DNA from: Vitrella brassicaformis CCMP3155
Lineage: Eukaryota > Protista > Chromerida
Assembly: GCA_001179505.1 (NCBI GenBank)
Contig: CDMY01000768.1
Coordinates: 1-22,628 of the forward strand
Reading direction: 5' to 3'
DNA length: 22,628 bases
Below the pieces are notes generated by a model. The model was not told the origin of the DNA. It searched no databases and saw only the letters and a list, made by a program, of their open reading frames with translations. Shown here piece by piece: positions 10,726 through 19,500 of the stretch (positions are counted from its first letter, which is position 1; every line of letters begins with the position of its first letter). The position numbers and the translations under genes were made by a program.

Positions 10726-12323
10726 ATGGCTCTGCGTGAGCACATGCTGTTTCTCATTGGCATCATGATTGATGCGTTGAAGGTGATCATGACAAACAAG
10801 GCTGCACCCACCTCCCCACGTCCCATGCAGCACCTTGCGTGCTCTCATCCTTTCTTCTCCTGCAGATCGTGCCCATCATGGTTGTGTCCTTCATCTACAA
10901 CTACATGCTCTTCCTGCGTGCTCCCCTAATGAAGTTCGCGCCCAGGACAGGTGGCAGCACCTACGATGAGGAGAGCGTCATCCGCGATGCCCTGTCGTGG
11001 ACGGTGGCCAAGGAGCTGTGGACGGCCGCCCGCATGGCAAGAGGCGCCGAGGTCAAGGAGGGCGAGGTGGCGCCAAACCCGACGGTTTGCACACTGCAAG
11101 GAGAAGCCAGGCCGCTGTTTGACGTGTTGCGGGAGAAGAAAGAGCACGACACGCAGAAGGCCTACGTCCTCAACTTCGGGAGCTGTTCCTGGTTAGTCAC
11201 ACACACCCCAACAGCGCAAGGCGGGACAACGAACCGACCAGCCCCTTGCTCCTGTTAACGCGTGTGTGTGTGTGTGCGTCTGTGCAGAGGTCCGTTCGCG
11301 GGCCACGCCGACCAATACAGGTCGGCCGAGCTCGCGATGGGGAGGGAGGCGGTGTTTCTCACCATTTATGTCAAGGTGGGCGGGTATAACATAACAGAGC
11401 ACGACACCCGCTGTCGATTCATTGTTTCTCTTTGTTGCATCATCAGGAGGCCCATCCGACGGATGGCTGGCACGTTGAGGGGAACGTCGAGGTGCGGCAC
11501 CACCAGTCCCTGGAGGAGCGCATCGACGTGGCTTCCCGGTTCAAGGCCACCATGGACCTCGGCCACATGGTCGTCGACGCCATGGACGCTGGAGCGGCCA
11601 TCAAATACGGTCAGTCACCCACAGGCAACCCAACCACCCACCCACCCACCCACCAATGCAAAGGCTCCCCTGTGTGTGTGTTCTTCAAGCCGCTTGGCCC
11701 GATCGGCTGTTCGTGCTGGATGAGCAGATGACGGTAGTCTACGTGGGCGGCCACGGCCCCTTTGGGTACAAGGTGCCCGACGTCGTCAAGTTCCTGTGCC
11801 AGCGGCTCGGGAAGGACCCTGCCACAGTGCTGGGCAAGATATCGCACAGTGACGACATGGGAGGCCTTTCTGCTGAAGTCGACGCACTGCCGATCTACAA
11901 GGCTGACGTGAGTGCTGCCGCCCATGGTATCGCATATGCATATGGTGTTGTCGTGGGCCGGGGCAGGATCTTGCCAATGCTGGGTTTGTGTTGTACCACT
12001 TTCCCGGCTGCAAATTCTGCGAGCGTGTCGAGAAGGTGCTGGCAGAGAAGAAGATGGCGTCGTGCCTGCCCATTCGCGACATCCATGACGCATCCAGCGG
12101 CCAGGACAACAAACAGGAGCTCATCACACGGGGCGGCAAGGGACAGGTGCGAAACCAGCAAGGAGGAACAGGGAGAAGCGGCAACAAGGGACTGATCCGT
12201 CATGGTCGTGTGTGTGTGGTGCTTCTGCAGGTGCCCGCGCTGCTGCTGCCAAGTGGTTCGATTCTGTACGACTCCAACATGATCATCCGCTTCATCAACA
12301 CACACTTTACCACACAGGGGTAG
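10726..12323 (+). CDS. DIO: Iodothyronine deiodinase-like selenoprotein fused to a C-terminal glutaredoxin-like (CxxC) domain; exons 10726-10782, 10866-11191, 11288-11375, 11447-11609, 11690-11907, 11967-12146, 12231-12323 (374 aa, Sec at the spliced TGA)
   Basis: Hydrophobic N-terminal anchor (MLFLIGIMIDALKIVPIMVVSFIYNYMLFL). Deiodinase motifs YVLNFGSCS-U-GPF, FLTIYVKEAHPTDGW, HQSLEERIDVA, VVDAMD, YAAWPDRLFV and GGHGPFGY. Then LYHFPGCKFCERV...ELITRGGKGQVPAL...YDSNMIIRFI (Grx/GST-N fold). All six introns are GT-AG and phase-consistent (1125 nt). A SECIS lies downstream. Confidence 0.92.
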
Positions 12324-12731: not shown

Positions 12732-12813
12732 AGCTGTTGCGCACGAGTGACGCGGACGGGTCAAACTCTGCAGAGAGACACACGTCTGCTGATATATGGA
12801 TGCAGCGACAGCT
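12732..12813 (+). promoter_or_regulatory. Eukaryotic SECIS element (type II) in the 3' UTR of the deiodinase-like gene
   Basis: Helix I: AGCTGTTGC (12732-40) pairs with GCGACAGCT (12805-13). Core: G-TGAC (12747-51) opposite TGAT (12790-93), giving tandem G.A pairs. Helix II: GCGGACG (12752-58) pairs with CGTCTGC (12783-89). Unpaired AAA at 12763-65, 12 nt after the TGA. Apical minihelix CTCT/AGAG (12766-69/12774-77). Confidence 0.88.
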
Positions 12814-14204: not shown

Positions 14205-14684
14205 TCATTTCTCGGAGGTGTGTTTGTAGCCTTTGTTGAAGATGGGTTGGTAGTGCTTGGACTTGCGGCGCAGGGACCTTAGCAGGTAGGTGTTGTCGCC
14301 GTGGTCCTTCTTCTCAGTCGTTGACGGCGTGTATGTGCCGCCCTGCACCACGCACACAAACAGAGAGCCCAGATGCACTCAGCGTGTTGTGCATGTCTCT
14401 CTCTGCAGTGTGCTTGCTGTGTGTACCGGGCTGCCGTAAGGCGACTGGGCCATCATGCGTGTGTTCCAGGAGCCCCTGAAGCAGTAAGTGGCGGGCACCG
14501 ACACGAACCCCTCAGTCGCCTCCAGAATGGTAGTCGCATCCACGTCCTGCAGAGAGGACAGGCAACCAGGACAGAGTGGATGCATCCCTTGCCTCAAGCA
14601 TGCCCCATTGCTCACGTTGGATGCAGCGGTGGCCATGCTCAGCACAGCAAGGAGGGCCAAAGCAGCAGCAAGAAAACGCATCAT
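14205..14684 (-). CDS. Small secreted protein of unknown function, 3 exons (14684-14616, 14546-14427, 14342-14205), 108 aa
   Basis: MMRFLAAALALLAVLSMATAASN|DVDATTILEATEGFVSVPATYCFRGSWNTRMMAQSPYGSP|GGTYTPSTTEKKDHGDNTYLLRSLRRKSKHYQPIFNKGYKHTSEK*. Classic signal peptide, two phase-0 GT-AG introns, and a double TGA stop followed by a CAGA-rich 3' UTR. Confidence 0.75.
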
Positions 14685-16142: not shown

Positions 16143-16580
16143 GACCGCTTTAGGCAGGTGTTGGTAGGTTCGGTTTATGTGGTGTTGTTGTGTCTTCTCT
16201 TGTACCGCTGGCCAGTGTGTCCTAACATTCACGCGGCTTTGAATGTCTGCCATTCGACCAACCGAATAGAGTGGACATTTTGAGTGTGTGAATGATATGG
16301 TACACCGATCGGCTGACTGTACGACTGTGTGTTGAGTCCATCCATCTGCATCAACGCAACAACCGTATCAATTCTCTCCCACCATCCAATCCGATGCATC
16401 CAAATCGTTGTTTGTCCACAAAATCATTCACAACGGTGAAAAACGTCCCACCCGCTAGGACAGTACGTACCCACCCCACCACTATCAGCACCGACATCGA
16501 CAGAAAATGAGACACACAGACAGACGCACTCCTCTCCGCCAGCCGTCTGAATTGGGGGCGAGTGAGTGTGCGAGTGGGCG

Positions 16581-19500
16581 CTAAATGGCATCATCGGCCC
16601 CCCGTGATGCCTCACATCCCCCCGCCCCCCTTCCCAACCGCCCCAGCCCGTCATCGGGATCCTCACGCGCCGCGCCCCTGGCAGGTGTCTTGGATGGACT
16701 GCGCAGGAAGTCCGACACAAACTCACCCAGGTACCCAGCTGTGTCCTTGACGATGTCCTTCCAGGGCGGCAGCCCCGCTTCACCATCGTCATGCCTTCGC
16801 CGGGTGTCGTTGATATGGTGCTGCAGCCGTCCCCCCGCCCCTCCCCCTCCCGCCCTGCCGGTCCTGTCGCCCCTGCCCTCACTTAGAGGCGAGCTGGGCA
16901 TCCCCCTGTCGCCATCACTCCACCGCCACGCACATCGCCTCCCGTCGGTCGCCTCGTGGTCGACGGGCAGACGCTCGGGGGTGTGGGTGTGGTCGTGCTG
17001 CACGCCGGGCAGCAGGTACGGGGTGGGCAGGTCGTGCCCGTTGCCGAACGGGGAGTGGTTGGGCAGCGGCACAGAGCGCGTAACCGGCACAGCGGCATGT
17101 GCGTGTTCTCCCGAGGCCTCGGTGTCCCTTAGTCGATTGCACTCTGGTCTGGGCACGAAGATGCTCGGGGGCAGGGCGCTCTCAGCAGTGCTGGTGGTGG
17201 TCATGTGGGCCGCCAGAGGGCTGGACGGCGGGCGGTGGATCATCCTGTCGGGTGACGCACCGTGCTGCGAGGAGGATGCCACATACGAGATGACGGGGGA
17301 CGGCAGCAGCTCCAGCGGCACAGTGGGTGGTAGCATCGGATGTACCTCAACATCGTCATCACCATGCTGCTGGCGGGACCCGATCAGCGGCAGCTGTGCG
17401 TCGCTGTCGGCGTGATGCGCTCCCCAGCGGATCTCCTGCAGAGGTAGGTAGGTGTCGGCTTGGCCGCCATTGAGGAGAGGAGGGGGTTGTGGGCCGTCCA
17501 CAGGGACGTCTGGACCGTCATCGGTGCCGTTGCCGTGAGGGGGGAGGGGTAGGGGGCTGTCATGTGGGGAGATGACCTTGAGCGATACGGCGATAGGCTC
17601 GAGGATGGAGCCCAGGCCGATGGTCGTGGCGACGATGAGGACGATCGTTGATGTCACAATGACGTCCTGACAGCCACCCACCAATCGCACCGATTGACGC
17701 TTGCCCTCATTGCGTGGCAGATGTGTCAATTAACGGGTCACCTTGTCGTGTTTGCATGTGGCTTCGATCTCTCCCGTGTTGGCGTTGATGTCGCAGGGCA
17801 CATTTAGTGCCAAGGCGAAGCAGATCGCACCACGCAATCCGCCAACAAACAAGAACACCTGAGCAAGACACACAAGACCGACAAATCATCGAACCATGAC
17901 GTCGTCTTGTCTCCTTCCCGCCACAGCCAGCCCTCACTTGTTTGTTGATCGAGATGCGCTGCTCACGGGGACGGCACCTGGAGAGAAGGAGGAACAGTGT
18001 GAGTGTCACATCGGCCATGACATCGGCCTCTCTATCTATCGTTACGCATTGAGCGCTGCCGATATGGGGAAGACGTGTGCCGCCCGGCCCACCACACACA
18101 GCACTAAACTCACAGCGATGAACGCCGCATTCCAATCATAGAAACCTGACCGACAGACAGACAGAGAGAAGAAGACAGACAGACGCGATTGACTCGGCAC
18201 AGTCCCTGGCTGTGTGCGCAAGTGTTCGTTTTTACCAATTGAGTCAGCGGCAACGAAGCCCAAATAGGCGAATGCGGCCGTCTCTGCCACCACAGCCAGC
18301 GTCTTGAAGGTGACATCCGACGATATCCGCGACCTCTCCGACAGGTTCCGCCTGACCAACTCGACGTTAACAAACACACGGATCAAGACATGCATGTGGC
18401 CTTCCCTTGTGGTGTGCTCGTTCGTGCGTCAGCTACTTGTTGTAGTGTGCCAGCATAACGCCACAGAAGAAGAGGGCCGTGATGCCCGAGAAGTCGTAGA
18501 GCTCCGCAAGCCCATAGGACAGGTAGGCTGAGAAGAATGTCAGGGCCACTTCAAACTCTGGGTGGCTGAACGAACGAATGAACCAACAGACATTTACAAA
18601 CAGACACAGAACAGAGAGTCCGGTCTTGATGCGCACCGACCGTTTCAGTTGCTGGTGGTTCTTGAAGAGGGCTGACACGAGCCCGCCCAGCACCAGACCG
18701 ATCAGAAGTGACCCCCAAGACACCTCCAGGAAACTCAGCACCACCTGTAAACCACCCGACATTCCCACACCACTCATCAAATCGCCCATCTCTTCTGCCA
18801 TGCTGACTGACCCACCCCTCCGAGCGACGTGCCCTTCGTCCCTCCCCGCTGATACATCTTGAGGAAGCCGTGGAACAGCACCAGGCACACGGCGTCGTTA
18901 AGGACACTCTCGCCGAACATCAAGCTGTACAGGTCCGCCGGACAAGATGGGAACTTGTCGAATATCGACAGCGTCGCCACCGGGTCGATGGCGGAGATGA
19001 GTGCGCCGAAGATGAGGCACAGGTAGAGTCTCGAGCTCTCGTCGCCCATGATGCCGACGAGCGGCGAGAGCCAGTAGAGACCGTACCCCACCACCACCGC
19101 CGACACGAAAGTGCCGATTACGCACAGCGCCAGGACCCCATCGATGTGCTGCCAGAACAGGTGGTGCTCGAGCGAGAAGGCCGCCTCAAAGATGATGGGC
19201 GGCAGAAGCACATAGAAGAACACCTCTGGGTCGAACCGCAGCAGAGACTGCAGCTTCGTCAGATGGAGCAGCCGCACCAGAACCCCAGTCGCGAAGCCCA
19301 CAAGAATCGACGCAGCACTCTCAGGCAGGTGTCTGATAGTGCCTCTCCGAATGAGCACCGCCAGATAAATCTGCAGTGGGCAGAGGGGAGAGGAGGGGCG
19401 CACACACAACAGGACAGCGAAGAACCATCATTGCAGAGCATCGCGTTGATTTCGGTTAATAAATTCGGGCCTGCCTTACGCATAAGAAGAGAGCGCCGGT

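Follow-up and report, generated by a model that had tools for sequence, protein, structure and literature searches.

We describe a nuclear gene of the chromerid alga Vitrella brassicaformis, made up of seven exons, in which the selenocysteine (Sec) codon is cut by an ordinary phase-2 intron and from which an mRNA with an in-frame UGA is produced. The gene was studied in a stretch of genomic DNA of 22,628 nucleotides (hereafter the window). In its predicted protein, a hydrophobic N-terminus precedes a deiodinase-type thioredoxin-fold domain with the site FGSCS-Sec-GPF, and a C-terminal glutaredoxin/GST-N-like domain with a CKFC motif follows. An ordinary spliceosomal intron at 11192-11287 parts the second and third bases of the Sec codon, and its removal yields an mRNA with an in-frame UGA at the Sec position of the family. 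Very probably, Sec is inserted at this UGA, and the placement of the intron within the codon is an accident having no function of its own. The split Sec codon is real but ordinary: it is a trap for annotation and involves no new recoding mechanism. The main value of the finding is practical and concerns annotation. It also extends the range of organisms with deiodinase-type selenoproteins to a chromerid alga, in which five deiodinase-like genes are present.

Structure of the gene and its transcripts

The coding sequence spans positions 10726 to 12323 of the forward strand and comprises 375 codons including the stop codon (127 residues, Sec and a further 246 residues), corresponding to a protein of 374 residues. 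It is interrupted by six introns of 59-96 nt, all of which begin with GT and end with AG (Table 1). Three transcript assemblies from different data sets cover the gene: L016 (JGI 3300017148 / MMETSP Transcript_29599), L017 (Logan ERR558152) and L018 (Logan SRR646408). When these transcript contigs were aligned with the window by BLAST, they fell into seven blocks of 100% identity, by which all six introns are confirmed; the sole mismatch is located within a spurious overhang of five bases at the end of intron 1.

In searches for relatives, the exons were used singly and the transcripts were divided at the UGA into two pieces. Exon 5, as the query of a word-index protein search whose length window was widened by means of the open genomic frame around this exon, returned a single entry, P0001, an ORF of 230 amino acids from an MMETSP transcript with 100% identity; the contigs that encode P0001 are L016, L017 and L018. 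When P0001 was itself used as the query of a word-index protein search, nothing but P0001 was obtained at E <= 1e-5, and the word-index search with exon 2 gave no relatives of 59-189 aa.

Table 1. Exons, introns and other features of the deiodinase-like gene, with putative introns of its paralogues (window positions unless a contig is named)
Feature	Position	Strand	Remarks
Exon 1	10726..10782	+	ATG and 19 codons, hydrophobic N-terminus; L016-L018 align from 10711/10714/10730 to 10782 and resume at 10866
Intron 1	10783..10865	+	83 nt, phase 0, GTGATC..CTGCAG; transcript alignment
Exon 2	10866..11191	+	326 nt, includes the first two Sec codon bases; transcripts, Pfam T4_deiodinase profile 38-112
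Split Sec codon	11190..11288 (T, G at 11190-11191; A at 11288)	+	becomes UGA upon splicing; L016:394-396, join identical in three assemblies
Intron 2	11192..11287	+	96 nt, phase 2, GTTAGT..GTGCAG; absent from three transcript assemblies, one copy in genome
Exon 3	11288..11375	+	88 nt, last base (A) of the Sec codon followed by GPFAGH...FLTIYVK; transcripts
Intron 3	11376..11446	+	71 nt, phase 0; transcripts; same position probable in paralogues C386 and C638
Exon 4	11447..11609	+	163 nt, EAHPTDGW..., deiodinase core; Pfam E = 5.5e-10, transcripts
Intron 4	11610..11689	+	80 nt, phase 1; transcripts
Exon 5	11690..11907	+	218 nt, AWPDRLFVL...GGHGPFGY, end of deiodinase domain and linker; Pfam, transcripts
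Intron 5	11908..11966	+	59 nt, phase 0; transcripts
Exon 6	11967..12146	+	180 nt, first part of glutaredoxin/GST-N-like domain, CKFC motif; Pfam Glutaredoxin and GST_N_3, transcripts
Intron 6	12147..12230	+	84 nt, phase 0; transcripts
Exon 7, coding part	12231..12323	+	end of Grx-like domain, TAG stop at 12321-12323; transcripts
Candidate type II SECIS	12732..12813	+	GUGA 12747-12750, unpaired AAA 12763-12765, UGAU 12790-12793, mini-stem
Putative intron near Sec codon, C386	C386:44554-44673
Putative intron near Sec codon, C638	C638:11798-11912
Putative intron near Sec codon, C603	C603:20011-20141
Putative intron near Sec codon, C255	C255:107765-107856

Formation of the Sec codon by splicing

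Exon 2, whose tail reads ...AAC TTC GGG AGC TGT TCC TG, closes with the TG at 11190-11191, and exon 3 opens with the A at 11288, which is followed by GGT CCG TTC. The intron between them starts with GTTAGT (11192-11197), ends with GTGCAG (up to 11287) and is thus of the GT..AG type. In the L016 mRNA the sequence across the join is ...gggagctgttcc tga ggtccgttc..., with the TGA at L016:394-396, and BLAST alignment of the transcript contigs with the window reveals that L016, L017 and L018 all break exactly at 11191/11288. The initial annotation of this DNA had placed the boundaries at the same positions and had given NFGSCS-UGA-GPF as the spliced reading and TGG as the unspliced one. Its coordinates are exact in the sequence, the spliced reading is seen in transcript L016 and the TGG is seen in the genomic DNA. 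Spliced RNA over 11191/11288 was looked for and the join was found in every one of the three assemblies; an acceptor differing from the one proposed was found in none of them.

In the unspliced frame, the Sec site reads TGG (Trp) and an intronic TAA comes 22 codons on. Retention of intron 2 would accordingly add Trp and 21 intron-coded residues to the N-terminal part before the TAA stop, yielding a dead product. Could the two exons be joined in another way? Every frame-keeping pair of GT/GC..AG sites near the Sec site was enumerated, short exon ends being joined solely to list the junction peptides, and among these pairs 11192/11287 alone keeps the motif free of gaps. On paper, the pair 11185/11289 is a stop-free alternative that gives NFGSC/PF. 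It requires a GAG acceptor two bases past a CAG and drops three active-site residues that all homologues retain. The alternative junctions, including 11185/11289, were rejected, as they are present in 0/3 of the transcript assemblies, which represent the majority isoform only, such that minor isoforms or retained-intron RNA could escape detection.

The intron itself is ordinary. An Rfam scan of the window gave no match inside it, and a DNA search of the whole 72.7-Mb genome gave no second copy. An origin from an introner or mobile intron family was also considered and rejected, since the intron is single-copy and only the query itself was matched.

The protein and the Sec position

Pfam T4_deiodinase (PF00837) is matched from profile position 38 to 112 before the UGA and from 116 to 233 after it, with no gap across the UGA. 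The match after the UGA reaches 92.7 bits against a cut-off of 27 and extends from the second residue of the translated piece (L016:397-1134). When the exons were compared with Pfam one at a time, exons 2, 4 and 5 matched T4_deiodinase, and exons 6 and 7 matched the Glutaredoxin/GST_N families. The NCBIfam family deiodinase_rel is matched as well, below its curated cut-off. Among solved catalytic domains, those of mouse Dio3 (4TR3; E = 4.7e-15) and Dio2 (9H48; E = 2.1e-12) give alignments that start at the Phe of the motif; exon 2 by itself retrieved no more than a chance match from the PDB. The C-terminal domain, in which the CxxC motif is CKFC, scores 39.4 bits with GST_N_3 (cut-off 22), 35.2 bits with GST_N_2 (cut-off 25) and 24.9 bits with Glutaredoxin (cut-off 22.9).

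Homologues from the environment were obtained by scanning metagenomes for a family motif of 24 bases, 17 of them specified, which was derived from the unbroken exons of the paralogues described below and required a contiguous TGA. The scan returned 101 loci, eight of which, with nine gene copies, are deiodinase-like selenoproteins, and these nine environmental homologues read LNFGS..-TGA-PP/PL. Because the motif demands a contiguous TGA, the scan is silent on how often Sec codons are split. No transcripts of the Vitrella paralogues were among the matches, from which records of the Vitrella genome were possibly excluded.

The profile, the structures, the paralogues and the environmental homologues agree, and therefore the spliced TG/A is the Sec codon. 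The initial annotation had assigned the UGA to the Sec position of deiodinases; this assignment holds, with the Pfam profile running contiguously across the codon and a TGA at the aligned site in all four paralogues.

Several observations on individual homologues may be added. Sec is followed by G-P-F in the present gene (U-G-P-F; window 11288-11297) and by P-P or P-L in all the paralogues and the nine environmental homologues; the deviating Gly codon is the first codon past intron 2. In one environmental or unplaced assembly, deiodinase-like genes are arranged in tandem: its locus L035 (JAAUXT010067389.1) has three protein matches, two of which read LNFGSCS-TGA-PPF, and its locus L026 (JAAUXT010015027.1) has two, one of them LNFGSRS-TGA-PLF. 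In a eukaryotic-looking metagenome homologue (L053/L070), an intron is located between IYIDE and AHPTDGW, one codon off the position of intron 3 of the window gene.

Paralogues and introns near the Sec codon

A search of the 72,700,666 bases of the genome (1064 contigs) has revealed four more deiodinase-like genes, which are referred to here by their contigs, C386, C638, C255 and C603. Each of them has an unbroken in-frame TGA in its motif, which reads NFGSCS-TGA-PP, NFGSVT-TGA-PP or AGSHT-TGA-PPF. From U to the residue before EAH there are 30 residues in all four paralogues and in the window gene, and they align with no gap.

Introns of the paralogues were assigned from GT..AG sites, reading frame and homology and are putative. 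Measured from the end of the TGA, the intron nearest to the Sec codon is at -1 in the window gene, +6 in C386, +6 in C638, +16 in C603 and +24 in C255. C386 and C638 are near-identical (L019, C386:40500-47500, and L020, C638:7500-14500, minus strand) and probably have three intron positions in common with the window gene. Both of them encode a Grx-like C-terminal domain, with a CPFC motif, so that the deiodinase-Grx fusion makes up a small family in the Vitrella genome. C255 and C603 gave no Grx match. The presence of four intron positions near the Sec codon could be due to the shifting of one old intron, to repeated gains or to selection.

Decoding of the UGA

Two components of the Sec machinery are present in the genome. 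A tRNA-Sec at C270:128036-128121 exceeds the cut-off of RF01852 with 71.6 bits and is classified by ARAGORN as SeC with the anticodon TCA; a multi-exon SepSecS gene is present on C544.

A simple SECIS pattern scan of the 22.6-kb window gave 12732-12813 as the lone match on the plus strand, where a scan of this kind has a chance rate of about one match per 22 kb per strand. This candidate is situated about 420 nt past the stop codon and lies inside the transcript contigs, which run on into a convergent gene. Its predicted fold has an energy of -35.1 kcal/mol (z = -2.15), with a helix 2 of 7 bp and the AAA 12 nt from the core, and GTGA cores belong to a recognised class of SECIS patterns (PMC2679728). 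The Rfam SECIS families gave no match, either in the whole window or in the 3′ region alone, even at E <= 10. Judging from the modelled fold, 12732-12813 is likely to be a type II SECIS; we infer that it functions as such and that Sec is actually inserted at the UGA.

In the paralogue C255, a candidate SECIS of the canonical form AUGA...AAAA...UGAU is found about 75 nt past the TAG (L021:3445-3493, minus strand; -32.6 kcal/mol, z = -2.49). The pattern scan gave no candidate behind the C386, C638 and C603 genes. A SECIS-like pattern on the minus strand of the window, at 16376-16427 (match at 16427), was dismissed as a chance match, since it is no better than shuffled sequence (z = 0.27).

Does splicing gate recoding?

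A codon interrupted by an intron, whether in phase 1 or in phase 2, is present solely in the spliced mRNA, and it is the spliced mRNA that eukaryotes translate. The proposal of the initial annotation, that splicing of intron 2 gates creation of the recoding site, is thus correct in a trivial sense, as the UGA comes into being only after splicing; it is trivial because the same holds for every split codon. As for regulation, there is no sign of it, the three assemblies being spliced alike. Nor is such a codon surprising in itself: two of the six introns of the gene cut a codon (intron 2 in phase 2 and intron 4 in phase 1), which gives any one codon a probability of about 2 in 375 of being split. 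From intron density and phase, a split Sec codon is expected in roughly 0.5% of such genes, and a few cases should occur in a large set of selenoprotein genes.

According to the mammalian rule for nonsense-mediated decay (NMD), a stop codon counts as sensitive when an exon junction follows more than 50-55 nt downstream (as cited in PMC4105750). Four further junctions are located downstream of the UGA, at 87 nt or more, and consequently the mRNA would be prone to NMD if the UGA terminated translation, like many selenoprotein mRNAs. The junction complex deposited at the TG/A join would be upstream of the UGA and would therefore be cleared by the ribosome, so that the split adds nothing to NMD exposure.

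Other explanations have to be weighed against an accidental split of a functional Sec codon. If the splicing of intron 2 were a regulated switch, in which retention or alternative splicing decides on the supply of Sec-decoding mRNA, for example in response to selenium, the UGA would, as it formally does, be present only after splicing, and the stop-free pair 11185/11289 could provide a Cys form, NFGSC/PF. However, the join is identical in 3/3 assemblies from different data sets, the alternative needs the GAG acceptor and deletes three active-site residues common to all homologues, a retained intron 2 hits the TAA after 22 codons, a stop of the kind that any retained intron would give, and no conserved RNA structure or Rfam match is found in the intron; we regard a switch of this kind as highly improbable. 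We give hardly any credence to the idea that the UGA is a true stop codon in a gene that is decaying or that makes only the N-terminal fragment of 127 residues. It would agree with the lack of a SECIS match in Rfam and with the way ORF callers cut the transcript at the UGA, but the deiodinase domain continues in frame past the UGA with 92.7 bits and is followed by the Grx-like domain. Moreover, the gene is expressed and the transcripts match its genomic exons with 100% identity, tRNA-Sec and SepSecS are present in the genome, and TGA is kept at the same site in the paralogues.

It might also be supposed that selection in this deiodinase-like family has favoured an exon junction in the Sec codon or shortly behind it, the TG/A split being the extreme case, and that mRNA surveillance or the decoding of Sec might be affected by the splicing history or a splicing-dependent mark near the UGA. 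In each of the five deiodinase-like genes an intron is situated between -1 and +24 nt, at four positions in a gap-free alignment, and at about six introns per 1.1 kb a target of 27 nt would be struck by chance in roughly 14% of genes. Even so, we consider such selection, with its effect on decoding or surveillance, improbable. The four positions may stem from one old intron that has shifted, in which case the five genes are not independent, the introns of the paralogues are putative, and the eukaryotic environmental homologue L053/L070 has no intron in the 75 nt after its TGA. In addition, according to background cited in PMC4105750, an exon-junction complex is located 20-24 nt upstream of a junction, and the ribosome would thus have removed it by the time it arrives at the UGA. 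In a weaker version of this reading, the family would offer a clear example of an intron changing its position. An intron placed by accident in a functional Sec codon is the explanation that we prefer.

Comparison with known systems

The protein resembles the vertebrate deiodinases DIO1-3 (PF00837; 4TR3, 9H48) in its thioredoxin-fold domain, in the site FGSC(T/S)-Sec-...F with Sec encoded by UGA, in the EAHPxDGW and GGxGP motifs, in the hydrophobic N-terminus and, presumably, in the need for a SECIS in the 3′ UTR. Unlike them, it has U-G-P-F in place of the U-P-P-F of DIO, a glutaredoxin/GST-N-like domain fused to its C-terminus and a Sec codon cut by an intron. Closer in kind are the deiodinase-like selenoproteins of protists and marine microbes, from Dictyostelium (PMC2375036) and the Sargasso Sea (PMC1088965), which are likewise non-animal and have Sec at the same site. 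In the Dictyostelium homologue, the SECIS is of type II and its AAA is unpaired (PMC2375036). The available parts of these two papers (PMC2375036, PMC1088965) make no mention of a split Sec codon or of a fusion with Grx, both of which are features of the Vitrella gene. A survey of algal selenoproteomes (PMC7539508) does not include chromerids, and a search of the literature for work linking Vitrella with selenoproteins found none.

As far as we know, an alga would not be expected to have thyroid hormones.

Within the genome, the paralogues C386, C638, C255 and C603 belong to the same family and have TGA at the same aligned site; they differ from the window gene in that their TGA is intact within an exon, with the nearest intron 6, 16 or 24 nt further 3′. 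The closest parallel to the split itself is the split start codon of VAMP1 (TOGA2 preprint, 10.64898/2026.06.30.735536), where a codon with a special role is also formed by splicing and defeats annotation carried out exon by exon; it is a start codon in VAMP1 and a recoded stop codon here. No published split Sec codon was found in a full-text literature search, an absence that is not proof of novelty.

Consequences for annotation

The one peptide that we could find for the gene in public data is the MMETSP ORF of 230 residues, which starts from the first Met past the UGA and has neither the N-terminus nor Sec; ORF calling treats the N-terminal part of 127 residues as an ORF of its own that stops at the TGA. 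The failure of gene prediction that the initial annotation had foreseen is thus borne out at the transcript level, although the truncation of the public peptide is due to the UGA itself as much as to the intron.

What would a split Sec codon look like in genomic DNA? When it is split in phase 2, it is always TGG (Trp) in the unspliced sequence, since the base next to the TG is the first one of the GT donor. By the same GT rule, a Sec codon split in phase 1 is predicted to appear as TGT (Cys) and would pass for a Cys homologue. Selenoproteome surveys that are based on six-frame translation or ORFs, or on in-frame TGA in genomic DNA, can miss such genes, which may be scored as replacements of Sec by Cys or by Trp.

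Neighbouring genes in the window

Beyond the stop codon of the deiodinase-like gene, L016 and L017 continue for more than 2 kb and enter a convergent minus-strand gene (L016:1138-3435), whose two introns at 14344-14425 and 14547-14614 read CT..AC on the plus strand. These two contigs merge two overlapping or abutting transcripts, and so they do not show where the true 3′ end of the mRNA from the deiodinase-like gene lies. At the far end there is an ORF with a signal-peptide-like start. Further along the window, at 18000-19400, the minus strand has long ORFs with many hydrophobic stretches, which suggests a gene for a membrane transporter.
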